Part shown: piece after piece, positions 677-27,372 of the stretch
Numbering within the stretch: the first letter of the stretch is position 1
How the letters are laid out: the number at the start of each line of letters is the position of its first letter
Assembly: GCA_001642005.1 (NCBI GenBank)
Contig: LWCA01000324.1
Span: 1 to 32,250 of the forward strand
Source of the DNA: Intoshia linei
Lineage: Eukaryota > Animalia > Orthonectida
Length of the DNA: 32,250 nucleotides
Direction of reading: 5' to 3'
The notes under the pieces: generated by a model
The model's database searches: none
Told to the model about the DNA's origin: nothing
The model's input: the letters and a program-made list of their open reading frames with translations, nothing else
Program-made: the position numbers and the translations under genes

Positions 677-1266
677 GGTAATTCCGCATTGCATTATACA
701 ATTCATTCCAATTCTCTTGAACTCAGTGAAATATTACTAAGCCAACCTTATATAGACGTTTCTTGTGTTAACAATGAAGGATTTACACCTTTAATGATAT
801 CATGTTCAAATATATTCATTTTCTCAAAATTGGAAACATGGTTTGAAAAACTTTGTTCTCCAATTTCAATTAATTATAAACACGAGGTACGTTAAAATGA
901 CGATTAAAATTTTAATTGTAATTTTTAGAATGGTAAAACAGCGTTGCATTATGCCATAAAATCAGGCAATGCAGATATTGTAAAAATATTATTAAAATGC
1001 AACGCCAATATTCACATTCCAGACAATAAAAACGAAAAAGCCTTACATAAAGCCATTAAATATTGTGATATCCCATGCTTAAAACTATTATTATCACATA
1101 AATCTATGCGATTGCATCATATTGTAAAACATTTAATGATAATTTTTAATTTTATAAAATTTAGCAGGAAATTGTAAACTCCAGCAATATAGTCAATTAC
1201 AGAATAAAAGAAATCCCCAAATTGATAAATATGACAATTAAAAGACTGCAAAGTCAATGTAAATAA
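677..1266 (+). CDS. Ankyrin-repeat protein, last three exons (5' part not found in window)
   Basis: Exons 677-886, 929-1123 and 1165-1266 (NAGNAG alternative acceptor at 1168), with phase-0 GT-AG introns of 42 and 41 nt. Ankyrin motifs GNSALHYTI, GFTPLMISC, GKTALHYAIKSGNADIVKILL, NEKALHKAI. Stop TAA at 1264-1266. Confidence 0.85.
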
Positions 1267-1275
1267 TGTATTTCC

Positions 1276-4200
1276 TCATTTGTAATTAATTAGTAAAATT
1301 ATTATACAGACTAGTATGGAAAAGGAAATTGTGTTACTTGAACTGACAATATTATTACATTTGTCACCTTTACAGCACAGTTCACATATCTAAATTAAAT
1401 TATTTGATTATTTTTATAAAAAAACAGGGTTGGAAACCAATGTACGTAAGTAAATTTCTTGGTGCAAAACTCATATCTGTGTACTCAAAAACTTTGCAAA
1501 AGGTGGAAATTTGTTCGGTTTTGGAGCAGATTATAATTAAGTACATGTATAAAATAAAATAATATACTTGAAGTATTTTCAATTTTTTAGTGTATTTTAA
1601 GACACCAAATCAAAAAGGTTGCCTACCCTGATATAAAGTATTCATACTTCTTTTCCTAAATTTTCATGGCAATACCATTTTTCAAAGTTGGCAAAATGAC
1701 AAAAATATTGACGACAGCTTCGTTGAATAATAACATTGTCTTTGGAACGAAATGTCTATATTTTACAGTGATGAATACATTCAAGTAAAACTTAAAATAA
1801 GGAAAATAAAACCATGCAATCCCCAATACAGCCATTGAGACCATAGGTAGCAGCGTTGTAGTAACAGTCTGATTTTTCAGTTTCATCACAAGAAAAACAA
1901 CGTTTGGGACCACACTGTTCACTGTTTTCACTTAGATGGAATGATTTTGCACACTCTGTACACATTTCTTTTTGATATTTACATAATTTACACCCTACGC
2001 CACATTCTAGAGTGTAACTTAAATAATTTTATGTTTTTGCAAACCTATACACTTGGTCTTATCTTTATTTGGAGTAAACTCTGCAATACACTCGTCGCAT
2101 CTAACGCGATCTATCCAATCTCTAGAACACAGATTACAATTATCAATTTCCGTTGAACATTCTAAATAAATATTTAATAAACTATAGAGATTTTAGGGTT
2201 ATGATATATTACTGGAGCATTGCTTTGGTTTCGTTTTTGTCATAAATGCTGAAGGTTCACATATGTTGCACAATTTCACACTTTTACAGGATTGGCAATA
2301 CTGATCGCAGACTAAGACATCAGATTACATTATTTGTATTGATAAAATGAAAAAAATTCGAGTTTTACCTGTACATTTATTTGTTGAAGAGTTATAAATC
2401 ATGTTATTTCTTAAACATTTACTACAATTATTATGTGCAGTACACTCTTTGCAGTTGTTTGGACATTCTATAAAATTTGAATAAAAATTAGCAAAACATT
2501 CCAAATTGATCTGAATTACCAGTACCATGTCCCCGTATAAAGGAACCAACCACCCGTACCCGAATGCAGAATATGAAAATAATGTATATCAATGTAATTT
2601 TAATATTTTGGCTTTAATAGTGAGTGATTTTAATTTTTTTAGAATTGTGAAGGTTTTGAAATGAATATATCGATAGAAAAAAGTTAAGATAGTAAATAGT
2701 ACATGATAAAATAGGGTTAATTAAAAAAAAATATATTTTATGTATTTTATGGCCTATTGATATTTATTATTAAAGTTTATGTACAGTTAACACGACAGTG
2801 CCATTAATGTACAATTTACATGTAGTTTAATTTATACCGTGACATTTTCCATCAAGTAAATATCGGTTCTCGTCACAAATGAGACAATGAAATAAATCTT
2901 TGCATTTAATACATTTATAGGCACATACTAGATTATTTTTGAAGTTTATATATTGGAAATAAACCTCCACATTCATTGACTATATTGTCATACCACATGT
3001 CTTTTGATACACAATCTGTGCAAGTGACATTTGAAGCACAAGTTCCGCAAAAATTCGGGCAAGCTAGAATATATTATACATTATTGTATTTAATATATCG
3101 ATACGGCCTAAAGTGCGCTCTTCATAAATTTGTAATATGAATAATCATCGATCAGAAAAAAGGGAAGAACTTTTAAAAAGTGGAATGGTAATTTTAGAAA
3201 ACCGTGCCATCTTCCGGGTTTAGAGCTTGGGCAATAAATTTTCAATTATTTTTTAATTTTCACTGGTCAAGGAGATTTTCATTTCGAGGGCAGGAAAGGT
3301 CTAGTAATTTTTCTCAGCTATTTTTAGGTATTTCGGGATATGCTCTCAACTATAATTTCAAAAATAATTTTGGAATTATTTATATGGTGTATTTTTATCC
3401 AATTTAAAAAAAATATGGTAATTTATTTTACCAAACTTTTAAAAACAAATTTAGGAAATTTTCTTTTATACTTTTAAAAGCATATCACAGGACGATCGAA
3501 AAAATTTAATTTAGAAATTTGGAACAATTTAAGCAAAAAAGTTTAAAAAAAATCTAGGGATATTAACGAAATAAGTAACGTTGTAGATTAATTTAATTAA
3601 AAAAATTTAAGAAGGGATTCTAGGATAATTTTTTAAAATGGTCAAAATTTAGGGTCAATTTTTATAAAACTTAAAATGGTTTTGATGGTAATTTCTTTCA
3701 TTATATTATGAAGGGATATACATGTATTAGCATAATTTTTTAATATAATTTTAAAAGTTGTTTCGGTTATTGTTAATAATATTAACATGTAAATAACTAT
3801 TAACTAGATAATTTTTTTAATATTTGGAATATTATATATCATAATATAGGTGGTCAACTGGTGGACTTTGGAGCAGTTGTGTGCAACTTTTAAAAATTTT
3901 CTAATTAAAATAAAAAAGATCAAAAATAGATTTAAAATATTAAACCATCATCATTCATCATTACTATTATATTTATGGGTTTCAATTATAGAATTCCTAT
4001 AATTTTCATCATGTTTTCATGTAGTATTATTTATTATCTACTTGTACAAATTTTAAACGTTTTTATAGTAAAAATTAAAATATCACCAGTATGAGTGTCG
4101 CTGATTTTTTCTATACTACATGTATATGTAAATATATAATACATATGTGTATCTGCAGAGTTATTAAAAAAATTTAGGATGATTGCATAGTATTAAAGTT

Positions 4201-7200
4201 TTTGGGGCTCTCCAAAATATTGAAGTGTGACATTATTGAAATTTATGAGAGGTGAATCACCGTGGATTCATCATATGCGGGGTTCTAGTCGAAAACAGTT
4301 CACCATCTTTTGACTAATACAGTGATGGCAACCAAATCAAATGTGATGTGTTAATTTTGAGATTATATTCTATATATATATATATCTCATATATATATCG
4401 ATTATACTCTAATATTAAATTATCTTATGGTGTATGTTTTAATCAAAAAAATTGTTACTCAGCTCTCCAATTGAAACAAAAGCTAGATTTTTTATCTATA
4501 TGAGTGAAAATGATTAACATTTTACAGCAAGTTTTTCAATAATACGTAACTGAATCTTGTATTCTCATCAAATCTAATTCTTTTATGATTTTTTTAACAT
4601 GTATAACTTTTGGAGTATTAAAAAATACCTCAAGTGTATATTTTTAACACGAAAACATATTTTGCCATCACTGGACAAATTTGATAATATGATAATTATA
4701 CGTTTGCATTTTCCACTTTCCAAAAAATAGGAGGATTTGCAACTATTACAAGTGTAAAGGTCATAACATGATTCGCATTCTGGAGGACAAGCTAAATAAT
4801 ATCTATATGATTTAATATTTTTAGCAGAATACGTGCACATGTTTTTAGTGTATATTTATCATTGCAATATAGGCAAGTAACGGTTGTCGGGTTTATATTG
4901 TTAATTTGACAAATATTGCAATTTCCGATGGTATCTTAAATTAATTAAAAAATATATAAAATAATTGGTTGGCTACTGTGGCAACGTAATATATATTGTC
5001 TATAAATAGCTGACATGAAAGGGTTAATAAATAGTGTATGCGATAACCAATTATATAATGCTCTATGTCATTGAGATCAGCATTAAATTATCTACAAAAT
5101 GATATCATTTATGAGTGTTGAATGGTGTTATAAGTATACATTTTTTCATTTAAAGAAATAAAAAACTAGGATGAATTATATATACATATTATTAATCCAT
5201 ACATTATTATAATAATCTCTAAAAATGATTTTAAATGTACTTGAACATTGATTATGTTGATTTAAACAATACGATTCAAAACATTTGGAACATTGCGTGA
5301 TAGATTCACATTCTTCGCATCCAATCGAACATTCTAATATGTGTAATGTATATTATTGGAATTTGAAGTAAAATTTTTATTTTAAAATAAATTATGAAAT
5401 TATATCTATATAAATTTTCAAATTACCATCACAAGTAAATGGTGCTTTTAGCTCATTTTTAAAATGACCCCTTTGACATTGTATACATCGATTCTTTGTA
5501 TCACATTCTAAGCAATTTTCTATACAAGCTAAAAAATACATGTTTACACGACAATCATTATAGATTTTACATAGGCATCTTCCTGAAGCAATATCCTCAA
5601 ACCTTTGGTCCTCACATTTATTACACGTATTTCCATTATCGCACAAGAGACAATTCATTGGGCATTCTATGAATCAAATTTATAATGAAATAAATAATTT
5701 TGAAGTCACAGATAAATAGTTGTGTGAAATAATGAATAAAGAAAAAAAATTAAAATTAATTATTATTATTTTTTTCATTAGTATGCAATTAAGATCATTA
5801 CGATACCAATATTATGTGTATTAATTGACTAATTAAAATTTGATAGGCCATAAAGTAACAAAAATGCTATGATGTCATTTTTTCCCTAAATCACAATAAT
5901 TTAGGGGTTTTTTCAGTTAATAAAATTATTAATTTTTTGACCCTAGCTGTCTAGTGGACTAAATTATATAATAAAAAAATTTATTAACTTTTGTTATTTT
6001 AATTGGATAATTTTTTGTTATTTATTACAGAGTTGCCAGACAATAGGAATTTATCCAAAGCCTAGATGATCGCTACATTATAATTTCAAAAATCCCACTT
6101 TTATCTCACCATTAATAAAATTTAATAAAAAATACCATTTCAAACCCTTAGCAAAAAATAAACTTTTACCAAATCTTCTGAAAAAAACCCCCTCAAGTAA
6201 ACTACAAAATAAAAAATCCAATTTTACCAACGCTTAAGGGAAAAATCCCAATTTTCCCATATTTTTTTGTAAAACACGATTTTACCAAATCCTATGAGAA
6301 AAAACATTTAATTTTTGTTGTTTTTGTTGTTTCCTTTGGAGTGCAAAAATAGTTTTTAAAAAACTCAGGGAAAAACAGAATTGTACCTATGGAAAAAGGG
6401 GAAAATCCACTTTTTTCAATATTTTTTTCAAAAATCCGATTTTACTAAATCTGATGAACAACAGCTTTTTAATCCAAATTCCAAAATAAAACATCAAATT
6501 TTACCAAACGTTTATGGAAAATTCCCATTTTTGCAACATTTTTTTGTAAAACACGATTTTACCAAATCATATGAGAAAAAACATTTAATTTTTGAACCTC
6601 AGGTTAGAATGTGACACTTTACAATAAGTCACTCGATTTTTAATTAATATGGATTGGGGAAGCAAAAAAAATTCAATACTTTTTTCACGACGGACCGGTA
6701 ATAAATTAAAACATTTATCGATGACCACATAACCGATATTAATAGGCAACATTATAAAAAATTCGATAAAAAACGTAAAAAATTGACTTTTAATTAGTAA
6801 ATTAATTTTTTCAAAATTATTTCGCAGACCGATAAAATTTTTCTCCGATCAGTATTGATCCGCGCACCGGCATTTGGGAAACGCTGCATTAAGTAACAAA
6901 ATTTTTTGCATTAAAGGTTAAATATAATTTACCAAGACATTCTTTCCTTGAATTTAAGGTATTAAAATAATACCCATCATCACAAAGTAGACAATTTGTA
7001 TCAGTATCACATCTTTTACATTTTTTCATGCAATCTAAAAATATCTCATATTAAGAATTATGCCTTATATGGTACAGAGTCGTTGATAAGAAGTAAAACC
7101 ATTTTCTAAAAGGGTGTTATTCATATTATCCTTTTGTATACCTTGGTCCTGTTAAAACAATATGCTTCCAAAAATAATGGTGACATAATTGCGTCAACAT

Positions 7201-10200
7201 CATTGTACAGATATTTAAAAGCACAGAAATTAATTATCAAATTTATAGGAAAAAGAATAATTACATCGTTAATTGTCGAATAATAATTTAAATAAAATCA
7301 AAAATAGAAAAAATACATAAAATTGTAAATGCTGTCGACTTTTTACACATTTATATCACATAAATTATTGATTGTTTCTTCTCAAAAATTTAAAAACTCA
7401 AAAAAATTAGTAGAATTTCAATTAAATTTCAACGAGTTCTGCATAATAAACAATGTATAATATACATTGTATAATATATATATATATATGTATATGCATT
7501 ATCAATTAAAAAACCTATGCATTGCCCTGCAGTGTCAGTAAATTTTTGTAAATATTTTCCATCCACACAAAGAGTACAAACTGATATGTCAGAACATTCC
7601 AAGCAATCTGGAATACATTCTAAATAAATTAATGAAAATTTTCTAGTAAAATTAAATTATAGGCCTTTTAATGATTTATAACAGTTGATCCCACTTTCAA
7701 TTTTTTTAAATGAGCCTTTAAAATAAATACAAAACTTATTTTTGGTACATAATGTATTGAGGAAGTTTATGATAATATACCCTAACACGGTATGTATGGT
7801 TAAATCGTGCCCACCCGAACAAGTGACTGTTGAGTTTATCAGAATTCTGGAGGGGATTTATTAATTAAATTTGCAAATTTCAGTAATAATCATAACAAAC
7901 CTGCACAAAAATTTTTTTGGTCATCCCAATAGACGCTTGCAGTTGTTATCATTGGCCCACATGTGTCGCACATACGCCAAGTGTATAATGTATCCAAAGT
8001 CCAATTTTCACATTCTATTCAAAATTATTAGTGTTTCATGGTTAATTTAAAGAAATTTGTAGAATAATTAACGACTAAATATAGACCGAACCTGTCGTAC
8101 TAGAAACCCCTCTTAAGGAGGGTTTAGCGAGCTTAGACTCGTAATATTTTAGTAAATGGGGTATGATTTTTCCAAAATGTGCATTAAAAAAATATTTTTG
8201 AATATCCTAACTATATTAAAAATGCATTTTTATGTTAAATTTAAACTGTCAAGTCCACACCCGTGAGCAAGTATGGTATATTACCATTACGCATCAATTT
8301 CTTAAATTTTAAGGCTTCGAGTATGGTAGATTGGACACGAATTAAATATGAATATTACGATGGCATAAGTTTTCATCTGTATCGAAATATTTTATTGTCA
8401 AATCAATTGAACATTGTGTGCAATCATCAAAATTTTCTGAATAGCATACTAAATATTATATTATATTAATAATTTAATATTGTGTGTAATTATTTTCATG
8501 AAAAAATGTACAAATGTATTACAGACACAAGCATCTTGATTATGTGACCAGACATGGTATTCTAAACATTGGTCGCAAGAAGTTAAATTTACACATTTTG
8601 TACAATTGTCGGCACAAGCTAAAATTTATGTTTTTAAATTAAAATCAACCTTTACTTACATTGTATTATCTACAATGTCAGTGTGTTATCGTTAATTTAA
8701 AAAATTAACAGTCCTAGAATTTACAAAAACCCAATTTCTAATATAGTTTTTCGGTGGTCATGTTTTTATCTATTTGTTTTTTGTTTTTGAGTCATTCAAG
8801 ATAGCAAACCCAATTTGGCCATTTTTTTAAAATAAAATCAACCAAAAATTTAAAAAAATATAAATTATGGGACGTTTTAAAATTATTAACGTTGTCTCAG
8901 CCTTAGAAACATACATCTTCATAAGCAAAGCAAAACCCCAAATTACCCTTGGTTTTAAAAATGAAAAAAGTGCTACAATTTTATAAATATAAATAAAAAA
9001 ATGCATTAAAAAATTAAAATAGTCCTAGAATTTTTAGAAAAAATACAGATGGGACAGTATATCCAGTTAACATATACAAAAATTTTTAATTTCACAAAGT
9101 CACGCCTTCACGGTCAAAAAAACCTTTAGTTTTTTTATTTATATGGTAACTATTTTATTAAAACAAAAAATATTAAATATCTAAGTCCTAGACAAAAAAA
9201 ATATTATTCTGATATAGCTTATTCCACTTAATCTAGATACAAAATTTCAACCTCAGAAATCTACGATATAGTTTATAGTAGAATTTGTAAAATATTATTT
9301 AATTTATTTTTTTAATAGAATTAAAAAAGTCGGCCCTTGGCAGAGCTAGCTGCTGTTTGTACAAAGTACATAACAGTAAAGCTAGCTCTAAATAAATCAA
9401 TATTTTTTATATTGAAATTACCCTCACAAACGGAGACGTTCCAAAAAAAATTATCGCAAGCGTTACAGTTTGTTTCGTCAGCTGTTTCATTACATATAGC
9501 AGCTACAGGTGTAGAAAAATAAATAAAATAAAAACTTTTACCTATACACGTCCACGTTTTTCGCTCAAAAATATAATTATCTTTACATTCCGCACCGTCA
9601 GCATTGCAATTTATACTGTTTGCAGTACACACTACATTACTATTAATAATGTATTTTATTTTATTATTTTTTATTATAGATATTCTCAATTTGAATCCAC
9701 CATTAGCAGTATTTATATGTTTTTTTGAATAAAATTTCAATGGTTTGGGTACTTTCTGTTAAACTTTAAAACTTGATTTTAAAAGGTGTAATATATTGAT
9801 TAAATGACAGGCTATGTTTTTAAAAAATAAACGACCTATAACCCTTGAAAAAATTGACTATAAATTAAATTTTTTAATTATTAAAACAATGACGAGATCG
9901 TTAGAAGGTTTTGTTATCAATTGAAAATATATATTCTTATACAATATTTTTACCATAGCAAGTATTAGAAATTGGTTTAAAAAACATATCACATCCCAGG
10001 CATTTATCTTCAGTATTCAGTGGTTGAATTGAGCAAACGAGAACTAAATATTTATAAGAAATTATTTATGTACATTGTACATTATGTAAATTTATATTTA
10101 TTTTTAATTTCATTATATTTTTATTGATTTACCAGTACAATAATCTACTTCCCAAACCAAACCCAAGCATGAATTGCATTCATCAGGAACTTCAATTAAA

Positions 10201-13200
10201 CCAGGATTTTGACAATTCGAATCTAAGGGGATATTAACTTTTAAAATACGATTAGTACTCTTAGACAATTCTGCACCAGGGTTGTAATGGATACCCGTTT
10301 TCAATGTAGCACAATATTCTGTGGCACTTTTACGAACCATTGTATTTCCAATATCATTCAAATAACTAACATTGCATTCCATTTCTAATAATATTTTATA
10401 ATGATATTTTTAATTCCAAAACATCTACCGACCTAGTTACTCTTATAATAATTTCGACACGGGCAATGGCCCGCTAAATTAAAATTAACGTTCAAGTTTT
10501 TTAAATGTCAGAGAAAATAAATGGTAAACATTTTTAATACCACATGGTGTTCCGCAAACAGTGGACATTTAGTGGATTGAATTTACCTATGCAAACATTG
10601 GCTGGTCGAAACAAACGAGTCATGCAATTGCAATGATTTGCATTAGAATAAACATTACAGTGATACGTTTCGCTAAAATAGCATTCATCGCCGTTCCAAT
10701 AATGGCTACCCAAAATTCTACTGACTATTTCGTTCACACTACAAAATCCCATAATATCTTGGTAGTTTAATTCGAAAAACGCTAAAAATATTTTTTTTAA
10801 ATTGAATAATAATAATAATAATTATTACATGTTCCAGGATTTAAAACCAACCCATAGCATCCATCTATATAATAATTTCCTCCAAATGTGCAAGGCAGTG
10901 CTATTTTAGTAAAATAAAAAAGCATTAAAATAGTATAAAAATGACTATGCCGTATAATGGTTTCCTGTACCAATCGGACCCAAGCTAAAATTGAGCCAAT
11001 TTTATCATTAGGTTTTTTTTGTATATTATTATTTATATTCCACCAAATTTTGATTCCGTCTGATGATATATTTTGAACCCAATTTTCTAATTTCAATTTT
11101 CAATCTCAATTCAATTTTCAATTTTTCAATCGGAACGTAGATTTAAAAAAATCAAAATGTTTTTAAATGGTAAGGTTAACAAGTAAATGATTTTTAATTT
11201 TTTTGGTAACAGTTCAACTTTTCCTCGGTTCTGATTGTTATAATGTGAATGAAGTAATAAATATTGTTGAAATTTTTATAATCCTATGTTTTTATAATAT
11301 TCTGGATAATAGACTCATAAATTACTATAAGAGTTTCAGATCACAATGTCAACACCCCGATTAGGCTATTTCACATTTTGAACAATGCTGTTATTTGTAA
11401 CAACTTTAGGTTACATGTTGTCTAGTCTGTGTCAAGAACACCTATTACCGGAGGAAAATGACATTAAATAATTACTAAATTTTATCAAAATATAATTACC
11501 TGCTATAACTGGTCCAGGTAGGATATATTCTTTTCCATAACAAAATTTGCATCTGTATTCCTGAATACATTATTATTAACTTTAAAAAGAATAATTAATA
11601 TTATTAAACGTTACGTCATTTTCTATATCCGTTGCTCCATCGCAGTTCACTAAATTATGTCATATTAAAGATATAAATTGTACATAAGCTACCTGCAACA
11701 CATGATGTACCATCCCATCTATGACCTTCACACATATCACAAATATTTTCGATGGTTTGTCCGGTATGACAATTCGCGTCTATTTAGAAATTACTTGATA
11801 TTATTAATGGAAGACAATAAAAATAATAAAATACAATAACAAATAAATAAATGTATTACTGTAATCATATATAACCCGACATTGGTTAAAATTTACATCC
11901 CAGTAAAATCCCAACCTTCTGCATCCGTAACACAGATTGTAGTACCTTGTTCCTAGAATGATGTCAACATTGTAACAGTTTACAACTATTATTCATTATA
12001 AATCGAAAATATAAATTAGATACTTAAACATTTTCTTCTTGTAGTATCCCAATATCTATTATTACACGCATTACATTTGTATTCTTGGTCTATTCTTATT
12101 TGATCATCACAATCCAATGCTTTAATTCAAATTAAATTCACATTACATGTATTAATGTCACTATAGATATTTTCATTTGATATGCTCATTTTTTTTATTT
12201 TGAAAAAACCCTAAACCCGTAAAATGACTGCGAAGTGTGACCATGGCAATTGAAAACTTTTATATAAAAAATATATACGTTGGCATTTTAAATTGTATGG
12301 GTCCCAGTAATGTGCGCAATGGATTGAAGACTCTGGATTCCAATCAGCATTATTGCAATCTATAATTACAATTTAATTTATAATTCAAAATATTGTTGTA
12401 ATTACCAACTACTTCTTCGCAAATATCATCACCAGGAAGGTTCATATATCTATTCTCGCATCTTTCACATTTTTCCGAACTCAAACGTTCTACATTGACG
12501 CCTGAATATATACATCCCTCTGTATCTTTTAGAACTATTAAAATAAAAACATTACATTTATATACATAATATGTATACAATATTATATTATTATATTATA
12601 TTATAATTGAACCTTACAGTTTGGTTAAAAAAAATCTTAAAAATCCCTCTTGAATGTTTACAAATGAAATAAAATGTTGTTGTAAATACAAAATGAGTTT
12701 GAGAAGCCCTATAGTGCAGAACACCCTAATATACATTATGTATTAACAATATACAATACGTTTATCAGGGCGGATCCAAGAGGCTAGTTAATGGGTGCGA
12801 GCCAAACGAGCAATATATTTAACTTCGCCGAAGCCGAAAAAAATTTTAGGGGCATCTCATTTAATTTCATTTAAAGGTTGTTATACAATAGTTTCCAAAT
12901 TTGTATTTTTTCGCAAAAGTAAAAAAATCATCAGCACAAAAAATTAGAGAAATTAATTTTGTTCATTAAATAATCCTAAATCAATTTGGTCCAGTCTTCT
13001 TGGATGAAGTATTGCAAATTCATTAACCAAACTTGCAATATCAAAATTATAGTCATAGTGGCAATTCATGAGGGCCAGTCCACATAACAAAAGGCTTCAA
13101 GTCACATGATCAATGGTTCATGTAATGACATTATGTAATGTTATGTACCATCTATATTGTTTTAATAAATTCAAACTTTTTTCAGTTATTTTACAAAACA

Positions 13201-16200
13201 TTAATTAAAAATTTAGGGGTGCAACTGCACCTTCTGCACCCCTTGAATCCGCCCCTGTAAATGTATATGTATATAAATGTAATGTCACTATATGGTCAAC
13301 TAAAACCCAAAATAATATTTGGTCCCCCAAGCAAATGAAGTCTGACACCTTTGATAAATACAATAAATTAAATTTACCCGTACATACATTCATGTTTTGA
13401 TCAAAATAATATCCAAAACAATGATGACATTCATCTGGATCTGTAACAGTTATTAAAATATAAGCAAGTGTGTATGTTTCACAGTTTATATCTAAAAATA
13501 ATATTTAGACGTTGATAACAATGTCATTTAATTTGGTCAATTTTCAACACAAATAAATAGAAAATAATTTATTACATTTGCAGGTAGTTCCTTGAGACCA
13601 ATAGCTTGACAAGGTATAATTGGAATGTATTCCACCACATCGCTTACATTCAATATTGGACGAAATTGTATTAACAGATTTACAATCTAATATAGTCAAT
13701 ATTACTGAAAATTGTATATTATATTATTTTAATTATAATGTAGAAAGTTCTACAACCCAAATTACCGTTTTTTAAAATAAAATCTTAAAATTTTATAAAA
13801 TAAATTCTGGTAGTTTTTCAAATATANAATAAAATCTTAAAATTTTATAAAATAAATTCTGGTAGTTTTTCAAATATATAAGCAGTGTCATTAATCTCAA
13901 CATCAAAACAGTGCTTTTTCACTATAAAATTACTAGATAATATTTTTTAATATTAAAAAATTGTATAATTTAAAAAAATTTAATCTCACAAATTTACGCC
14001 TTCACGGACAAAAAACCACTTTACATTATTAATGTTCATTGTTTTTAATTTTGTAAAATTACAGTTCTGTTATTAAAACAAAAAATATTCAATAACTTAT
14101 AGTCCTAGAATTTAAACAATAGATTATTCTGATTCATCTTATTCTAATTGATCTAGACACAAAATATCAACATTAGAAATATACGCATTTCCGGTTAAAA
14201 TAACTTTTAATATATTATCAACCAATATTTTACAAATTTTTTGATTAAAATTAAAATGTAAATATTCATCATAAAATTTCAAAAACTGTGGGAATTGACC
14301 GTATACATATATCAAATACAGAAATATGGGTTTCCATCTCATGAATTGATTCTTTCTGTTTTTTTATCATTCCTACGCAATTTTTTATTTTCAAAAACTT
14401 AAATTTAATTAAACAACTTAATTATAACTTTGTAATTTGTAACTATAATTGGATTAATTGTCTATAATTATAATCAACTAAAAAGTCGACCCTCGTTAAA
14501 AATATCTGTTGTTTGTACGAAGTGCATAACAGGCATGCTAGTTATACATTAAAATATATAAAAGTATACTTAAACATTTATCATTTTTATAATACAGTCC
14601 ATCACATTTGTGGCAACTGACTGAACCTGCTTTGATTGCAGATGCGTCTTGCAAAAATCCAGTACAAGCTATAAAATATAGTATATAATATATATGTTTA
14701 TTTTGTTAATAAAGATAATTTTGTAATTACAGGTACATCTGTTTAATACGGTATTAAATGCACTTTTTTCAACACAAAAATCTTGGAATTCACCACCACA
14801 GTCCTCCAAATCGTTACATTTCAAACAATTGTATTCACATTCTTTAAATTAAGGATAAAATGTATACATAATGAATATTACACATATAGGGCCGTGGAGA
14901 GGGACTAGGGTCATATGATCCTGGCCTACAACCATGAGGTAACTAGTTTTTTAATTTATTAATAGACCTGTTGGAAAATTTTGATAACCAATGGGATTTC
15001 CAACGCTTATTTTTAATTTTTAGATAATGAACGATTGATTAAGCAATGTATATTATATATTAATATATATTACGGTGTTAACTTTTTGATCGAATTTTAG
15101 AAATTAATAAAATACAGGGCAGTACGGTATGAGAAATGCAATAAAAATGACATCTGCGGTGTTTGTTTTTAATATTATTACAAAAACATCGGCCTGCTCT
15201 GCAATTTAAGAATAACCATAATATTTTGAACTGAAATTTATTATTATTATATTATTGTTTACGATTATTATTAATTTCAAGTCGATTAACAATGTCATTA
15301 TCTAATTCACCGTCAATACATGTAACCGATCTAATTTTTGTAGGCATTTGAAAGTATTTATGGTACTGTCGTTACTTTACCCCGTAAAGAATCTGAGAAA
15401 TAGTATGAATGATTTTTTTGAATACAAGTGGAAAGGTTGCTCTTTAGGAATGAATTCTATGGTAGAACACCTAAAAGTGAAAAAATATACATATAATGCA
15501 ACAAACTTTTATAAATGTATCATTATGATTCAACTTACAACCATACAACTTGTATAGGTTCAACAGTTACGAATTTGGCTTCCTTTCAACAGGCCAATGT
15601 TTTTCAAAATTTAGGCTTAACGAATAGTACCACCGTTCTTAGAATTTTTTTTCTCATCCTGTATAACTCTGTATTTTTGTTCTTAGAAAAAAGTTAACAC
15701 ACTAATATATATAGGTCCCAATTTTTATCTAGTCCGACCTACTGCTAGCTTTCCCAGTCTGTAACATATAACAGTGAATCGGTAGAATAATGTTATACCC
15801 AATCTACCGTAACTTGAGACCCCTATTCGGGTGGGGCTCGACGAAATTTTTGTAAAATGAGGTCGATTTTTTCCAAGTTGACCATTAAAAAATTATATTC
15901 TTAAATATCAACTATTTTGAGGTGTAAAAAATTGACTCTATACTCGATAGTTGGTTTATCTGTTTATTTTATGTAATTTATTGGTGACGACGACGGTAAC
16001 GAAAAGTTTTTAAAAATTAATCTAAACGCCAAACCATAAAATGAAACTACTATTAACTGAACTAAATGTCTTACTTTTACATCTTGTATCCCAAAAATGG
16101 CCAAAGTGATTGGTGATGCATTTGTTGCATTTTGTACTATTTAATGTAACACATTCTATAAATTTAAAAATAATAATATTACGTGTATATTACTAATACA

Positions 16201-17243
16201 AACATTATCATTCCTTAAATATCCCTTATTACATAAAGTACATCCAAAATACTGATCGCAATGATTTTCAGCACAATTTGAATCGCAAACTAGATTAAAT
16301 AAAATGGAAATAAATTTCAAAATTGATACGAGTGCATGTTTTTATCTTATCATTCCAATAATAGTTTACAACACACGTACTGCAATCTAATTTACTTACA
16401 CAAACTTGACATTTATGGGAACATTCTAAGAAATTTATAAAAGAGTCGATTAATGCAGTACTTTTACAAATATTATTTTTTAAATAGTGTCCAATTTCAC
16501 ACCTGTAACAGGTATTTTCATTTTTGCATTTTAGACAATTTTCTGGACATTGTACTAGAAAGAAAGATTAAAGTATAATAATTAAATTGAAAATGAGAAT
16601 AAAATAATATTAGTTTTCTAAATGTAATAAATTACTTATACACTGTCGACCCTCGATTAGATAATAATAACCCTGTTCACATTCATCGCAATTTGAAGAA
16701 TTTGTACAATAATTACAATTTGGGGAACAATCTAAGTATTAAACTTTCCAATAATATTAATAATAATCATACAAGAGCATTGTCGTAGATTGTCCACATA
16801 ATAATTTTTTTGGCAACGATAACCTTAATTTTAAGTTTAACATTATTGTTGATATTAATATAAATTTACTAAAATTGATAAAAATTACATTCCTGTGTAT
16901 TCATACACACGTTACAGTTATCCACACACTCTAGTTAAATAGTTATAATGTATTTAAAAGTGTAGTACTGGTACATCTCTTCCAGCGATGATTATAATAA
17001 TAATTAGATTTACAATCCAAACATTGGTTTATAGCCTTTTCACATTTAGTACAGTTATTTATTCCACACTTTGCAGTGACTATTAATATAATATACAAAT
17101 ATAAGTACATTTTTAATGTAATTTCCTTTATAAAAGTGGTATATAAAGTGGTTTATAAACTTACTTTGATAAAAAAACAGTATATGTAAATAAAATATAA
17201 AGATATGTGCAGGCCGAAATATAATTTGAAGTTCAACTTTCAT
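1276..17243 (-). CDS. Giant predicted GPI-anchored cysteine-rich surface protein: signal peptide + ~40 furin-like CxxC repeats + LU/three-finger domain + GPI signal (~1482 aa, 45 exons)
   Basis: Manually spliced, all GT-AG, open throughout (4449 nt): 17243-17165, 17079-16969, 16930-16889, 16823-16773, 16731-16636, 16554-16462, 16425-16330, 16289-16194, 16155-16075, 14841-14731, 14668-14570, 13686-13576, 13491-13378, 12534-12406, 12359-12279, 12119-12024, 11985-11860, 11779-11693, 11649-11615, 11560-11500, 10900-10829, 10781-10587, 10384-10259, 10222-10133, 10043-9954, 9631-9542, 9502-9422, 8618-8523, 8448-8359, 8014-7901, 7619-7515, 7034-6933, 5666-5571, 5528-5427, 5333-5241, 4934-4833, 4791-4702, 3063-2965, 2927-2838, 2467-2369, 2311-2213, 2161-2045, 2006-1813, 1755-1648, 1389-1276. 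N-terminus MKVELQIIFRPAHIFIFYLHILFFYQITAKCG. Example repeat CPPECESCYDLYTCNSCKSSYFLESGKC. C-terminus ...ICELCCKGDKCNNIVSSSNTISFSILVCIIILLINYK*. That all exons form one transcript is inferred. Confidence 0.8.
1354..1905 (-). other. LU (Ly6/uPAR, three-finger, Quiver-like) domain within the giant protein
   Basis: Spliced sequence RCFSCDETEKSDCYYNAATYGLNGCIGDCM|TFRSKDNVIIQRSCRQYFCHFANFEKWYCHENLGKE|ICELCCKGDKCN: N-terminal CxxC, an RSC motif, terminal CCxxDxCN signature, 12 Cys. Followed by NIVSSSN and a hydrophobic tail (GPI signal pattern). Confidence 0.8.
1425..1630. mobile_element. Small hAT-like MITE in last intron
   Basis: Imperfect terminal inverted repeats CAGGGTTGGAAACC (1425-1438) and GGTTGCCTACCCTG (1617-1630). 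No clear 8-bp TSD. Confidence 0.5.
6220..6594. repeat. Imperfect direct repeat (~95 bp, two close copies and one diverged middle copy) inside an intronic insertion
   Basis: ~6220-6317 and ~6498-6594 share ...TTTTGTAAAACACGATTTTACCAAATC(C/A)TATGAGAAAAAACATTTAATTTTTG. A diverged unit lies at ~6380-6470. A hAT-like end (TTTGGGAAACGCTG) occurs at ~6873-6886. Confidence 0.75.
8085..8210 (+). repeat. Dispersed repeat, similar copy at ~15795-15910
   Basis: AATATTTTAGTAAATGGGGTATGATTTTTCCAAAATGTGCATTAAAAAAATATT versus AAATTTTTGTAAAATGAGGTCGATTTTTTCCAAGTTGACCATTAAAAAATTATATT, each preceded by a CCCC...GGG GC-rich patch. Confidence 0.5.
8669..9385 (+). mobile_element. Non-autonomous Helitron-like element, copy 1
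   Basis: Candidate A|TC start at 8669. 3' hairpin CTGTTTGTAC-AAA-GTACATAACAG then CTAG at 9382-9385. Internal landmark CACAAAGTCACGCCTTCACGGTCAAAAAA is shared with other copies. Confidence 0.6.
12766..13257. mobile_element. MITE with GC-rich TIRs (hAT-type ends)
   Basis: CAGGGCGGATCCAAG at 12766 and CTTGAATCCGCCCCTG ending at 13257. Non-coding interior. TSD not recognisable. Confidence 0.7.
13730..14541 (+). mobile_element. Non-autonomous Helitron-like element, copy 2 (5' boundary approximate)
   Basis: Landmark CACAAATTTACGCCTTCACGGACAAAAAACC (~13988). 3' hairpin TGTTTGTAC-GAA-GTGCATAACAG then CTAG|T at 14538-14542. Confidence 0.6.
14887..15761 (+). mobile_element. Decayed TIR element, long copy (related to 21645-21886)
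   Basis: Left end TAGGGCCGTGGAGAGGGACTAGGGTC, internal GACCTGTTGGAAAATTTTGATAACC and right end CCCAATTTTTATCTAGTCCGACCTACT...CTG all have counterparts in the 21.6-21.9 kb copy. Confidence 0.55.
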
Positions 17244-19043: not shown

Positions 19044-19114
19044 TGCGTCAACCGGGAATTGAACCCGAGTCTTAACCTTGGGAAGATTACATGATACCAC
19101 TACACCACTGACGC
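19044..19114 (-). tRNA. trnG-CCC: tRNA-Gly (anticodon CCC)
   Basis: Reverse complement GCGTCAGTGGTGTAGTGGTATCATGTAATCTTCCCAAGGTTAAGACTCGGGTTCAATTCCCGGTTGACGCA (71 nt). Acceptor stem GCGTCAG/TTGACGC, anticodon arm TAATC-TTCCCAA-GGTTA, T-loop TTCAATT. A T7 Pol III terminator follows immediately. Confidence 0.95.
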
Positions 19115-22093: not shown

Positions 22094-25000
22094 CTAAATG
22101 TTCTCAACATTGTCATTTGTTAAAATATTGAGATTAGTAAAATTGCGTGAAATGGATTGAATATCATCAGCTATTTGACATTTTGGATTAATTTTACCCA
22201 ATTTCCAAGTTCTTTTTCGACCAGTTTTTTTACACTTGTCTTGATATTTGTTATTTATAATTCTAAAAATAATTTAACTAATTTAAAAAAATCCTATACC
22301 TAAATATATAGTTTTTACGTTTTTCATCATTTTTTATTACAACATTGGAATCAATGTTGGTTTTTTTAAAATCATAACAACTTTTATTACGTTGAAACCC
22401 AACATCCTAAAACCAAATTACACCATTTTATTTTTTTATTCTTTTATTTACCAATTTGACTGAATTTTTGACCTTTAAAGACGTCATATTATTTTTTCTC
22501 TTTTTCCAAGTATCTTCATGATTTGATTCTAAAAACAATTGACAATGTGAAATAAAAACAACCTTTCTTAATTTCAAATTTAGTATGTTGATTATGTTTA
22601 GCTTTCACAAATATTTTTGATTTCAAGTTTTTTCTAATAATTTAATAAATAAAAATACAAAATTAACAACCCTCTATTTCTAGAATTTAATAATTTTTGT
22701 TTAATATTTTTGTCTTTTTTAGGAGTAAATTTATTTTGAATAAAATTATTCATACTTTTTGACAATACATTATTTGAATTTATTGAATTTACAGAAAATT
22801 CATCACACATTTTAAAATTGTTGGCAATTTTATTTTCTTTTAAAAAGTTATCTACATTTTTAAAACTAAAGGTTATAATTTTAGGTTCATCTTTTTGTTT
22901 GTGTTTCAATTTTTCACATTTTTTACGTAAATTTCGACGTATTACATCTCGGACATTATTTAAATAAAAATATTCACTGGTATTCAAACGACTTAGCGGA
23001 TTATCATTAATAAAATCCAAGGCTGATATTGCTAAAGCTCGACCAATCTAAAAAATTTTGAAGTTTTTTTACAATTATTTTGGTTAAACCTGTTCGTAAT
23101 GTGTTGGAGTGTATTTTGGTGGAAACTTGCATAATAATGGTGGTGATGTCCGTTCATAAACATCGTTTGGAACAGGAGATAATTTGTTAATTATTCGGCC
23201 CATATTGTAATTACATTCCAATGTATAACTGCAAATAGTCATTATCCTTACTTATATAATATGTTACGCAATATTTGTTTGTGTGTCTGTGTTCCCGTTT
23301 ATTTCAATAACTACTAGTCTTAAAATTTTATAACGTTCACATTTCAATTACAATTTTTTCCGGGTGTTAGTAAAAAAAATTTCAACCTCCCAAACTCACA
23401 TCCTACAGGTCAAAAACTACAATTGTCCTTTTTTTAAAAATCAAACGAATTGGAGAATTAAAAAAAATATATACTCTGATACGGATTTTAAAATTATAAA
23501 TATTATCATAAATTTAAATTTAAAAAAATATATCTTCAGGACCAAAACCACAAATTACCCTTTTTTTTTAATGAAAACAGTTCTAGAATTTAAAAAAAAT
23601 TACATGTGGTACAGTTTTATCCTGTTAACACACACAAAATAATTTAATTCCTAAAATAGTTTCGAAATAAAAAAAATGAATATTAAAGTATTTTTTTGAA
23701 CGTGAAGGCGTCACTTATTCAAACTGAAATTTTTTGTGTCTTAATAGTCATTCTTAATTAATAATCATCTTAATGTCAGAATACAAATATAGCATTTGTA
23801 ATTTTTTTAAATTTCTTGGGCTGTTTTTATTTTTAAAAAAAAAGGGGTAATCTTCGATTTGATCGTGAAAATTATCTTTTTTTAGGTTACCAATTATGAT
23901 AATAATTATAATTTTAAAAACTATCCCAGAATTTATGTTTTATAAAATTTTAGGACATGTTTCATATTTAAAACAAATGGTAATTTGTGGTTTTGACAAT
24001 GAAGGTATGCATTTCTGAGGCTGAGATTTACGACAATGTTAATGTTTTTAAACGTGTCCCAGAATATGTTTTATTAAATTTTTGGGATGATTTTATTTTT
24101 AACAAAAGGTAAAATTGGGTTTTTGACCCTGAAGGACTCAAATTCTGAAACTGAAAAATAAATATAAACACGTCCTGGGAAAAACTGTATTAGAAATTGG
24201 GTTTTTTAAATTCTACGATTGTCAATTTTTTAAATAAACAGTAACAGACAGACATTCAATTTTATATAACTATAATTAATGGATGTTTTCATATACATTT
24301 GTATAAGTCAATTATAAATGTACATAAAATGAGATACCGGAAGTGAAAATGATTAGTAGTGAATCAGTGCTACTAATATGATATTATTACTAAGGATTAT
24401 TTAGTTTCAATAACAAATTTAATCTGAAAATCAAACAGGCAGATTGACATAAATATTATTAATGACTACTGTTAACTGATTTAATTAGTTATTACAAGTT
24501 GTAATATTAAGTATATCTAGTTTTAATTTACAATTAAAGCTACGTAAAATCGTTACATAAAAATTTGCCAATACAACCTCAAAATTATCACACCACATTT
24601 TAGTTGGTTGTCATCATTTTTTTTCAATACCTTCATAGGATTCCAGAGCGAAAAAAGGTTATGAATACCTGGTTTACATGGAAAAATACATCAAGAAATA
24701 AAAATAGATATTTAAAAGAAACGTAAAAAATGTTTATAAATAACAAATTTGTGCGGGTATTGCAAAATCTTTAATCGGCACAGCATGGTGATGCCCCAGG
24801 CATCATGCCTGACTAGTGCATGTAAATAGTTATTTATATACATTTATTTATATTTATTCTACTAAAGTACTCAATTGCAATAGAAATAAAAATAACGAAT
24901 CTATAATAATAATCTTAATTTATTGCAACCAATTTAATTGCAATTCATTGGTAAAAATTATTGAAAAATAATCAATTAATTGTTCAAAAATTATTTTTCA

Positions 25001-27372
25001 ATTATTTTCAATCCCTGGTCACTAGTGACTCACTACACTGTAATACCATTTATTAGTCAATATTTATATATAATGGCAGATTTAGATGTGTTTAAAACTT
25101 TAAGTATTGCATGGGTTTATAAAATTAAATTATAATAGTATAAATTATCACGAATCAATTATGCCATTCAATATATAAATAAATAACTAAAACACTAAAA
25201 ATAAATAACCGTTTACAATAAATCATTTGAAAATAAATAAATAGATAGTGTAAAAAATATTATGTAAAAATTTAATAAGATTCAATGTCCCTATGTAATT
25301 ATTAATTTTTAAAAGTTGACATTAACAAAATATAAAAATGGCATTACCTATTAATCAATCCAAAAGTCTTACAAATAGAAACACGTCCAGATCCTTCTTT
25401 ACTAGACATTCTATTTGAATCTTTCATGTACATATTTTTGAAAGAAAAATTTGATGCATTAAAATCAAAATGAGGTGTATTCAAAGCCATTAATTTAGCA
25501 AAGAGAATATTATCAACTTGTTCATCTTCTGTTTCAAAGTGGTTTCCGTAAAAGAAACAGCCTCTTTTGGAAGCATGTGCATGTAAATCTAAAATTTGTC
25601 AAAAACAGATAAAAATGTTAAGTCGATATTGATGTTGTAGATTAAAACAACACAACTCTGAAAAAAAACTGTATCAAATTAATTTTGAATCTTTAAAATA
25701 AAATGTAACATTCTACAATTACACCCTCAATTAAATTCAAATCATTAATCAATTATTTTCCATATAATGCAATCAATCAAAAAGATGAGTAAACTGATTT
25801 AAAATTTGTTATGTAAATCAATAATGTAGTTATTTGACATTTGATTAAAAAACAAATGTAATTAAAATTACCAAAATAAAAAGCAATTCCGCTACAAGGT
25901 TTGTTTAAATTGTATAAAGTGTCAATATTAATGTCTTTGAAATCAGTATTAACCGAGATTAAATTTTTAGAACCATTTTTAGTAAAATCCAATTGATGAA
26001 AAAAAGATACACCATTTGATTTTTCGCAGACATTAAGACTTTTGGAACTTTCAGTGAAATCCGTTGTTCCCTAATATATTATATTAATTAGATTACTTAA
26101 AATCACCTTTTCATTATTAGTAATCATACTTGCATTACTCCCATTAGACTTCACAGCTGGTAAATTAGGTTGAGTAAAATGAGCCAAACACTTGCTAAAT
26201 TTACTCAAATGTGTGTATTTGCTTAAAGCGTTTATATAATTAAATTTTCCATTGGGATCCATTCGGTTCATAAAATGATAATAAATCAATAAAGATTTTA
26301 CAGCATATATTGAAGGATATTTTTCAAAATCTGGTATTCCCATATACATGCGGTTCAGATTAATTCCCTCTAAATTTGTACGATAGTGGCCACATTTTAC
26401 ACCGTCGGGGTTCAACATTGGTATAATTTTAAAGACAAATCGTTTTCTAAGTTTGACGCTACGTTCATCATTTTCTCGCAATAAAAATTCAATGAATCCT
26501 TTATAAACAAAACTCGATGGAGTTTCTCCAGGATGTACTCTAGCACTCAAAAAATAGACCTGTTTATAGGAAAATATAAAAACTTATTTTAAGTGAACCT
26601 TTTTGTCTCTAAAGGTTTGACACCGTGGTTTGGGTTCAGGAAACAGACGTTTATCGATTCGATCTTCGCATTCGGTCAATTTTGAAAAATTAGAAATTGT
26701 GATTAAATCAATACGATTTCCTCCTTTCGAAAGACATAACAATTCGCGGTAATAATAAATTTCCCTGTTGATATTAAATTAAAATTAAAAAATGAATAAA
26801 ATATACCCAAGTTTACAATTTGCGTACTTGCGATCCAATTTCTCCAACTGTGTTTGGCATTTTTCATAGGACCATGGATAAGTGAATGCGAAATATGTAA
26901 ACGATTTTAATGCTGCCGTAAATTTATGATGAAATGTCAATATTTTAGTTTCAGATGAAATAAAATCATACACGACACGACTACTCACTCTTTCCCAACC
27001 AAGTTTACCAGGAATAGTTCTAGTTACAGGTGCAAATCCTTGACCAAATAATTTTCCATGTCTATTCAAATTCATAATATTGAATTGCACCATTGAGCCA
27101 ATAGGTACGCCAGTTACAGAAAAATAAAACCACGATCTATTGTTAATGAGTATTAAAACAAATAAAATCACCTATTCGAATTTTCGTAAATGGTTCCTTC
27201 ACAATCCAGCCGAGTCCAAATGTTAAAAACGTAAATTTTATCAGAATCCTCTAAAAAACACTTGAAAAATTAAGAATCCAAGTGTACCTTCAATAGACGC
27301 CTCTTCTACTCGGGCCAGGTTTCCAGAATCAAATTTTGAAGAAAACACAATATTTCCAAAGGATTTTTCCAT
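22094..27372 (-). CDS. AGBL5: Cytosolic carboxypeptidase 5 (M14D tubulin deglutamylase)
   Basis: Exons 27372-27288, 27250-27172, 27136-26807, 26764-26599, 26559-26107, 26070-25872, 25588-25348, 23228-23090, 23047-22671, then four less certain low-complexity tail exons from 22633 to stop at 22096-22094. Motifs: [19 protein letters not shown]...[28 protein letters not shown] (HxxE), [45 protein letters not shown] at the extreme N-terminus and HASKRGCF fit the CCP5 subfamily. Confidence 0.93.
23250..23650 (+). mobile_element. Helitron-like repeat, copy 4 (partial) in AGBL5 intron 7
   Basis: GTGTGTCTGTG 5' region, AAAACCACAAATTACCC subrepeat, GGTACAGTTTTATCCTGTTAACACACACAAAA shared with copies 1 and 3. 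Confidence 0.55.
23690..24275 (-). mobile_element. Helitron-like repeat, copy 5 (partial, inverted) in AGBL5 intron 7
   Basis: Reverse complement reads TATATAAAATTGAATGTCTGTCTG...AAAACCCAATTTCTAATACAGTTTTTC... (matches 8726-8752) and ends near the GTGACGCCTTCACG landmark (plus strand CGTGAAGGCGTCAC at 23701). Confidence 0.6.

Follow-up and report, generated by a model that had tools for sequence, protein, structure and literature searches.

What kind of gene is assembled from the dozens of short, cysteine-rich, stop-free stretches that line the minus strand of one contig of the orthonectid parasite Intoshia linei? These stretches lie between positions 17110 and 1279 of the window analysed here, which is the whole 32,250-nucleotide contig (C298 of a 41.6-Mb assembly). 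An earlier sequence-only reading had joined them into a hidden gene of 45 exons encoding a giant protein of about 1482 amino acids, anchored by glycosylphosphatidylinositol (GPI), and had suggested a lineage-specific family at the host interface, resembling variant surface antigens. Our analysis supports one very large gene of about 44 exons and about 1,466–1,478 amino acids, known to NCBI as A3Q56_03087. Its product is likely to consist of a signal peptide, a rod of furin-like (FU) repeats, a 12-Cys module resembling Ly6/uPAR (LU) domains and a GPI signal, and to be a structural or adhesive coat protein of an annelid-type family. The annelid relatives, which share the design, are new, and they weaken both the host-interface and the variant-antigen parts of the earlier proposal.

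Nearly all of the cysteine-rich stretches have an AG two bases upstream of the frame and a GT one base downstream, with consistent phase across these flanks, and this placement marks them as symmetric phase-1 exons. Gene finding used a simple codon and splice-site model trained on the clearest exons and then a dynamic programme, whose output ran from 23 to 64 exons according to the penalty and served as a guide only; the final model combines it with spliced transcript contigs and the public gene model. The best joined model has 43 exons with a median of 96 nucleotides, GT-AG borders throughout (100%), phase 1 in 39 of 42 introns and 18 introns of at most 60 nucleotides. Its coding sequence of 4,437 nucleotides gives 1,478 amino acids and a single, terminal stop codon, and an in-frame stop lies 14 codons 5′ of the ATG at 17110. 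When a 36-nucleotide phase-1 mini-intron at 10258-10223 is removed, as in the public model, the result is 44 exons and 1,466 amino acids; the uninterrupted frame described earlier thus stands, with slightly revised counts. The joined protein contains 211 Cys (14.3%), 80 CxxC motifs and 13 sequons, and nearly every module corresponds to a single symmetric phase-1 exon. Database searches were made with single exons or annotated proteins, and the joined protein was handled locally (frame, composition, alignment and scoring of the end module with a hidden Markov model, HMM). A ciliate-type genetic code was ruled out, as the stop-separated pieces are joined through canonical, read-confirmed introns. 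Mini-introns of 36–42 nucleotides are frequent in the gene (16461-16426, 10258-10223, 2964-2928, 2044-2007, 4832-4792 and 5570-5529), the last four being confirmed by spliced contigs.

Transcript evidence came from X1, the only public run containing the stretch and one whose kind is unrecorded. It contains 28% of sampled words of the stretch, approximately the share of exons, and its contigs were compared over 1250-7240. There they are spliced across the last 14 exons, and the borders of all 13 consecutive introns coincide exactly with the prediction (1389/1648, 1755/1813, 2006/2045, 2161/2213, 2311/2369, 2467/2838, 2927/2965, 3063/4702, 4791/4833, 4934/5241, 5333/5427, 5528/5571 and 5666/6933). 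All 13 read CT..AC on the plus strand, that is, GT..AG on the minus strand. Joined, the 14 exons give an uninterrupted frame of 500 amino acids ending in the 12-Cys module, from KRCFSC to CCKGDKCN, and a further 25 residues, NIVSSSNTISFSILVCIIILLINYK. A single contig of 1,277 nucleotides joins exons 40–43, passes the stop codon and reaches 1250 and 519 nucleotides beyond. This extension reflects either a long 3′ untranslated region (UTR) or convergent transcripts that overlap and were merged in an unstranded contig. Two ankyrin-repeat-like open reading frames (ORFs), at 689-1177 (plus strand) and about 731-1250, converge on the 3′ end of the gene.

Every one of the 13 joints links neighbouring exons. 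Combinatorial splicing was accordingly rejected, no skipped junction being found among the joints of the X1 contigs in 1250-7240, although contigs may hide rare isoforms. Over the same 3′ part the introns and the stop are confirmed and no split into separate genes is seen. Weighing against a single gene, the 29 exons upstream of 7034 lie outside the contig-confirmed part and are predicted only, and symmetric phase-1 exons hold the frame in any combination, so that an open frame alone is no proof of a single transcript. The 16-kb stretch could accordingly hold two or more genes or pseudo-exons, its 5′ two thirds standing outside the transcript confirmed at the 3′ end; several upstream introns are long (803–1,233 nucleotides) and predicted exons 18/19 and 20 are weak. 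We give this arrangement only a slim chance, since an independent public model links 17540/17079 to 1792 as one gene, neither an alternative terminal exon nor an alternative start is evident, and two Intoshia paralogues (P0003 and P0004) and the annelid proteins match in overall length and order.

That public model, a hypothetical protein of 1,079 amino acids (P0001), means that the gene was not hidden as had been claimed; what is true in the claim is that the annotation is truncated and lacks the most informative end of the protein. P0001 starts with a 13-nucleotide exon at 17540 (MNGF) joined to an acceptor at 17079, in place of the ATG at 17110. It omits about ten exons, among them exon 30, which joint 5666/6933 shows to be in use, and it keeps one mini-intron; some mini-introns are in frame and free of stops, so gene predictors retain them. 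Its terminal sequence, ...GCIGDCMVLFSLF, is a read-through into the intron after exon 41, and because of this the model contains no tail and only one third of the end module.

Given this gene structure, we asked what the repeated modules are. The 6-Cys modules follow the spacing C-x3-C-x2-C-x5-C-x2-C-x(10-13)-C, and per-exon counts give about 20 exons with six Cys and two CxxC motifs. In protein order, about seven 6-Cys modules are followed by a middle block of divergent 4-Cys 'CxxC...W' modules (exons 9–25) and then by about 15 further 6-Cys modules, so that the earlier count of some 40 repeats agrees with the roughly 40 furin-like or related cysteine modules in the model. A family profile (A1) built from 13 relatives, without the joined protein of the window, matched the Fu1-Fu2 chains of R-spondin-1/2 in the PDB (E 5.7e-5 to 4.6e-4). 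AlphaFold, run for paralogue P0003 with a 13-row alignment, modelled residues 620-1067 entirely as beta-hairpins, at block-mean confidence (predicted local distance difference test, pLDDT) of about 60–85 with one dip near 770-810; the N-terminal half fell below 50 and the middle block was modelled without confidence. Foldseek searches with this model returned RSPO2 Fu1-Fu2 (probability 0.85–0.89), HER/EGFR, laminin-type EGF arrays and the rod of the Chlamydomonas mastigoneme. On the strength of the R-spondin profile match and the Foldseek matches, we read the 6-Cys modules as furin-like repeats. Family models speak against this assignment: Pfam gave only sub-threshold EGF_laminin and VSP hits on ten single exons of the window and nothing useful for P0001–P0004, with no family, Furin-like and GF_recep_IV included, in P0003 or P0004 at E<=10 or in P0001 at E<=0.1. 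Neither a phmmer search of P0001 against the PDB, which found no relative, nor a library search with a 63-amino-acid exon, which apart from the gene itself retrieved just one unrelated repeat protein, added to the picture.

The module that closes the protein differs from these repeats. In the read-confirmed frame it begins with CxxC, contains 12 Cys and ends in CCx4CN directly before the GPI-type tail, and in an alignment with 13 relatives all 12 Cys and the final N match the modules of the annelids Dimorphilus and Paralvinella and of protein P0022 column by column. The 12-Cys module ending CCKGDKCN that had been noticed earlier is borne out, and its cysteines carry the Ly6/uPAR signature. An HMM built from annelid-type modules only picked the last exon of the window as the best of 1,810 six-frame segments (E 0.0018), at 15.1 bits against at most 7.8 bits for FU exons. 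The locally joined module of the window was matched over its full length with 24.7 bits, which one of 2,000 shuffles with fixed Cys also attained; for the module of P0003 the score was 44.1 bits, attained by none of 2,000. Among the ESM-Atlas neighbours of two end modules, those of P0003 and the Dimorphilus protein P0009, all that are Pfam-labelled belong to the LU clan (scores 0.77–0.88; DUF753, UPAR_LY6, QVR, Toxin_TOLIP and Activin_recp); for these two members the labels are leads only.

A different reading of the same module is that it is no LU or three-finger domain at all but a family-specific cysteine knot or a degenerate repeat that merely happens to end in CCx4CN. Several results count on that side and against our assignment. 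Pfam models including UPAR_LY6, QVR, Toxin_TOLIP and Furin-like found no match in the exons of the window, P0001, P0003, P0004 or the annelid proteins, and the LU models (UPAR_LY6, QVR, Toxin_TOLIP, DUF753 and Activin_recp) found none in P0003, P0009, P0017, P0021, P0022, P0023 or an isolated module. A genome search with UPAR_LY6 (PF00021) gave two unrelated weak exon matches and no locus of the family, and LU chains in the PDB were matched neither by sequence (phmmer with P0001 and the isolated end module) nor by profile A1. AlphaFold reached no confident fold, with pLDDT below 50 for the end module within P0003 and a mean of 42 for the isolated module (L011:2767-3090, member P0023), a value at which Foldseek is meaningless, and classical Ly6 proteins have a shorter first loop. 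We nevertheless regard a non-LU module as unlikely, as the CxxC start and CCx4CN end come with 12 Cys at LU-compatible spacing next to a GPI-type signal, the low-confidence model has a central beta-hairpin, for two independent members every labelled Atlas neighbour falls in the LU clan, and the annelid HMM separates the last exon from the FU exons. The end module is thus quite likely LU-like, and a three-finger fold is probable. The only other genomic match to the last exon of the window (E 0.057) is a locus, L010 (G000:C2313:208-581, plus strand), that is probably a small stand-alone LU-type gene, its last exon encoding TCEQCCDTDKCN and a hydrophobic tail.

How the protein may be held at the membrane is suggested by its two ends. 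Hydrophobic 15-amino-acid windows (mean Kyte-Doolittle >2.0) are confined to residues 3-17 and 1459-1478, in keeping with the hydrophobic N-terminus and tail reported before, and the joined protein has no catalytic or cytoplasmic domain; that no protease, kinase or transmembrane-cytoplasmic domain is evident had also been said correctly. These features support a secretory-type N-terminus, with V-T-A before K14 in a frame whose start codon is predicted. A GPI signal consists of small residues followed by a short hydrophobic run at the very end of the protein, and in Ly6 proteins CCx4CN adjoins it. The tail of the window protein, which ends ...IIILLINYK, has this layout, and so have all 13 relatives: each of the 14 members ends 25–36 amino acids after CN, in a stretch whose small residues are separated by a short spacer from the terminal hydrophobic run, with no cytoplasmic domain. 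The protein is therefore predicted to be GPI-anchored. The genome also encodes PIG-T (94.9 bits) and GAA1 (49.9 bits).

Two observations go against these predictions. One concerns the N-terminus, where the putative signal peptide is very short and the start differs from that of the public model; the other is that PIG-K/Peptidase_C13 was not detected in an exon-wise genome search, which does not show absence. The same protein might thus do without GPI, either secreted to the extracellular matrix or cuticle or, tail-less, spanning the membrane once through its C-terminal hydrophobic stretch; GPI attachment is predicted from sequence layout, and the uncharged run has just 15 residues before NYK. 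We hold this to be rather improbable, since small residues (SSSN in the window protein, DGKAG in the annelid ones) precede a short hydrophobic run in all 14 members, each of which stops 0–12 residues past that run, the layout follows directly on CCx4CN as in Ly6 proteins, and two further components, PIG-T and GAA1, are in the genome.

We then examined the relatives of the gene within Intoshia. Exon 41, which carries the last FU module and the opening part (one third) of the end module, is found on other contigs in nine full-length paralogous copies, at 33–40% identity. The paralogue loci that were fetched share the three-exon ending, CExCCxxDxCN and a hydrophobic tail, and two paralogues are annotated, P0003 (with a complete C-terminus) and P0004. 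Sequence comparison indicates about ten divergent paralogues, and the low identity of their end exons marks the duplications as old. P0001, P0003 and P0004 each contain a single copy of a marker module, CYGCRRLG..W, and module order therefore appears fixed. Paralogue L002 (G000:C1634, minus strand, locus 2156-1926) has lost one intron of the end module, so that the middle and last exons form a single open frame there. A related-locus search with member P0012, one of the proteins described below, found none.

Outside Intoshia, the C-terminal third of P0003 retrieved DgyrCDS837 (P0007) of the annelid Dimorphilus gyrociliatus. A search with DgyrCDS837 brought 12 more Dimorphilus proteins, one from Paralvinella palmiformis (LSH36_15g03064) and three further proteins (P0012, P0022 and P0023); the search was word-based and cannot show absence from other phyla. 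The Dimorphilus proteins include DgyrCDS833, 836, 843, 10779, 14434, 14465, 14640 and 14891; five of the 13 are encoded on one 3.6-Mb contig. A homologous end module and hydrophobic tail are present in at least nine complete Dimorphilus proteins, the Paralvinella protein, P0012, P0022 and P0023. Most of these members start with a classical signal peptide and most have 13–14% Cys, with CxxC counts of about 90 in Dimorphilus, 113 in Paralvinella and about 60 in the shorter P0012, P0022 and P0023. One Dimorphilus member has an identical CCKGDKCN. The annelid proteins, all of them unnamed, resemble the window protein in signal peptide, length (1,400–2,000 amino acids), homologous 12-Cys end module and hydrophobic tail, and differ from it in sequence (24–33% identity), in lacking the middle CxxC...W block and the CYGCRRLG marker, and in a conserved LDGKAG before the tail. 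The public model of DgyrCDS837 stops within the end module (…KCYECRGNQEDCGND…IIDCEDV…), without a tail, and so resembles the truncated Intoshia model. By these comparisons the architecture is common to Intoshia and annelids, of which Dimorphilus and Paralvinella are both non-parasitic and at least one is free-living.

These relatives bear directly on the suggestion of a variant surface antigen or coat at the parasite–host interface, in which paralogues or exon cassettes would be switched as in Giardia VSPs or ciliate immobilization antigens. The long CxxC arrays and lipid-anchor-type tail fit such a protein, as do a multigene family in a parasite and symmetric phase-1 exons that permit cassettes to be skipped with the frame kept. 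Set against this are the few, old Intoshia copies, a fixed module order, the lack of alternative junctions among those seen and larger families in free-living relatives, the family being expanded in Dimorphilus and represented in Paralvinella. For these reasons we consider antigenic switching highly improbable, and the lineage-specific host-interface family of the sequence-only reading is not sustained.

Returning to the coat protein of an annelid-type family, we propose the following sequence of events. The precursor would enter the endoplasmic reticulum through its short signal peptide, and GPI transamidase would then exchange the hydrophobic tail for a GPI anchor at a small residue within SSSN. 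The mature glycoprotein would stand on the outer leaflet of the membrane, its LU-like module lowermost and the disulfide-knotted repeats above it forming a stiff rod of tens of nanometres, and could serve there as a structural or adhesive part of the cell-surface coat, a role suggested by architecture. In view of the annelid homologues, the design would have been inherited from free-living, annelid-like ancestors, and so predate parasitism, and would not have been invented for it. A bolder proposal, which we find doubtful, is that these are 'stalked three-finger' GPI rods restricted to Annelida and Orthonectida, whose LU base docks on membrane partners, and that about ten were kept through extreme genome reduction for a host-facing coat, with paralogues divided between the plasmodium and the free ciliated stages. 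If so, the shared architecture would be a molecular character tying orthonectids to annelids.

A search of a library of papers found no description of the combination of furin-like repeats, LU-like module and GPI-type tail, in agreement with the earlier remark that the architecture was not recognised. Two familiar building blocks thus come together in a multigene family of an orthonectid parasite and of annelids, which is not a new principle. For a parasite about which very little is known, the gene supplies a concrete surface-coat candidate. The model given here corrects the truncated public annotation, and the architecture provides a potentially lineage-restricted character that bears on the annelid affinity proposed for orthonectids.

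Table 1. Exons of A3Q56_03087 and associated features of the window (FU, furin-like; P0001, public gene model).
Feature	Position	Strand	Content and support
Exon 1	16969..17110	-	ATG 17110; encodes MYLYLYIILIVTA/KC, putative 13-aa signal peptide (nt 17110-17072) and first FU module; predicted
Exon 2	16889..16930	-	First half of FU module, 4 Cys; present in P0001
Exon 3	16773..16823	-	Second half of exon-2 FU module, 2 Cys; predicted only, not in P0001
Exon 4	16636..16731	-	FU module, 6 Cys, phase 1-1
Exon 5	16462..16554	-	FU module, 6 Cys; following 36-nt intron kept in P0001
Exon 6	16330..16425	-	FU module, 6 Cys
Exon 7	16194..16289	-	FU module, 6 Cys
Exon 8	16075..16155	-	4-Cys module; predicted only
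Exon 9	14731..14841	-	6-Cys module; predicted only
Exon 10	14570..14668	-	4-Cys module; predicted only
Exon 11	13576..13686	-	W-type module, 4 Cys; in P0001
Exon 12	13378..13491	-	4-Cys module; predicted only
Exon 13	12406..12534	-	4-Cys module; in P0001
Exon 14	12279..12359	-	W-type module, 3 Cys; in P0001
Exon 15	12024..12119	-	W-type module, 4 Cys (CNACNNRYWD); collinear tblastn match to paralogue P0004
Exon 16	11860..11985	-	4-Cys module, marker motif CYGCRRLGFYW; tblastn match; in P0001
Exon 17	11693..11779	-	W-type module, 4 Cys; in P0001
Exon 18	11615..11649	-	35 nt, phase 1 to 0; in P0001; with exon 19 the least certain pair
Exon 19	11500..11560	-	61 nt, phase 0 to 1; in P0001; with exon 18 the least certain pair
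Exon 20	10829..10900	-	2-Cys module; in P0001
Exon 21	10587..10781	-	Irregular module, 6 Cys; in P0001
Exon 22	10133..10384	-	252 nt, 6 Cys; probably two exons around phase-1 mini-intron 10258-10223, removed in P0001
Exon 23	9954..10043	-	4-Cys module
Exon 24	9542..9631	-	4-Cys module; in P0001
Exon 25	9422..9502	-	W-type module, 4 Cys; predicted only
Exon 26	8523..8618	-	FU module, 6 Cys; tblastn match to P0003, 52% identity; not in P0001
Exon 27	8359..8448	-	4-Cys module; predicted only
Exon 28	7901..8014	-	W-type module, 4 Cys; in P0001
Exon 29	7515..7619	-	FU module, 6 Cys; predicted only
Exon 30	6933..7034	-	FU module, 6 Cys; donor confirmed by joint 5666/6933 (96 letters on shorter side); skipped in P0001
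Exon 31	5571..5666	-	FU module, 6 Cys; both junctions in transcript contigs
Exon 32	5427..5528	-	FU module, 6 Cys; both junctions in transcript contigs
Exon 33	5241..5333	-	FU module, 7 Cys; both junctions in transcript contigs
Exon 34	4833..4934	-	5-Cys module; both junctions in transcript contigs
Exon 35	4702..4791	-	FU module, 6 Cys; both junctions in transcript contigs
Exon 36	2965..3063	-	FU module, 6 Cys; both junctions in transcript contigs; the 1,638-nt intron before it is the longest
Exon 37	2838..2927	-	FU module, 6 Cys; both junctions in transcript contigs
Exon 38	2369..2467	-	FU module, 6 Cys; both junctions in transcript contigs
Exon 39	2213..2311	-	FU module, 6 Cys; both junctions in transcript contigs
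Exon 40	2045..2161	-	FU module, 6 Cys; both junctions confirmed, within 1,277-nt contig
Exon 41	1813..2006	-	Last FU module and N-terminal third of end module (~1905-1813: KRCFSC...C...GC..DCM, Cys 1-5); both junctions confirmed
Exon 42	1648..1755	-	Middle third of end module (Cys 6-8), phase 0-0; both junctions confirmed; not in P0001
Exon 43, coding part	1276..1389	-	Acceptor confirmed; 1389-1354 encodes ICELCCKGDKCN (Cys 9-12); stop 1278-1276; 3′ UTR extends below 1276
C-terminal tail	1353-1279	-	25 aa: NIVSSSNT, ISFSILVCIIILLI, NYK; GPI-type signal
Dispersed repeat	6050..6900	.	Outside the encoded protein; inside intron 30

The remainder of the window, which is AT-rich throughout (GC 21–33%), contains ORFs that resemble ordinary animal genes (ankyrin-like, M14 carboxypeptidase-like and bHLH-zip). 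Those at 26071-27171, 27608-28285 and 28557-29264, all on the minus strand, look by eye only like an M14 cytosolic carboxypeptidase and a Myc/Max-type bHLH-zip protein (RSQHNDLERKRRNDLK...). A tRNA-Gly (CCC) at 19044-19114 on the minus strand was found by ARAGORN and Rfam (56.9 bits). The dispersed repeat in intron 30 has a core of about 260 bp with at least 1,571 first-look candidates genome-wide at 70–85% identity. RNA contigs contain it in abundance, at a word depth reaching 774, and show many chimeric joints. A second interspersed element of about 118 bp, at 23241-23345, has at least 1,841 candidates at about 90% identity, including copies at L001, L003, L004, L005, L006, L007 and L009, and has frames reading ...LYNMLR..CLCVCV.... 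In seven of nine fetched paralogue loci a copy is found no more than 4 kb from the 3′ end, a proximity that is probably not meaningful because the element is so abundant.

The Intoshia protein was compared with several known groups of cysteine-rich proteins. Giardia VSPs (PF03302) share the long CxxC arrays, and the 38.6 bits of member P0023 exceed the Pfam VSP cut-off, whereas single exons of the window score 10–12 bits against a cut-off of 31.4 and P0001 has no match; VSPs have a transmembrane helix, a CRGKA tail and hundreds of members, in contrast to the LU-like module, GPI-type tail and about ten paralogues found here. Ciliate immobilization antigens are GPI-anchored coat proteins with periodic cysteine repeats. 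Their likeness to the window protein is one of general description, with no homology demonstrated, and they differ in being protist proteins without an LU module and with mutually exclusive expression. The best Foldseek match of the P0003 model was the Chlamydomonas mastigoneme protein Mst1 (PDB 8tx1 and 8wa2; E 8.5e-6), likewise a long cell-surface rod of small disulfide-rich beta-hairpin modules; organism and anchoring differ, and TM-scores of about 0.07 limit the likeness to the repeated modules. With the furin-like proteins (R-spondins, the Cys-rich region of PCSK5/6, FRAS1 and the cysteine-rich domains of the EGFR and insulin receptors) the window protein shares, by profile and Foldseek matches, the 6-Cys module itself. 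It differs from them in having many more repeats, in carrying no protease, kinase, TSR or other partner domain, in ending in an LU-like module and GPI signal, and in leaving the Pfam Furin-like models silent. Finally, the Ly6/uPAR GPI-anchored proteins, such as CD59, Lynx1 and Drosophila Sleepless and Boudin, have in common with it the CxxC start, the CCx4CN end, 10–12 Cys and an immediate GPI-type signal. The end module of the window protein is missed by the Pfam LU models, and its assignment follows the Cys pattern, the fold being putative. Those proteins are of about 100 amino acids or consist of a few tandem LU domains; here a single LU-like module would sit below a repeat rod of about 1,350 amino acids.

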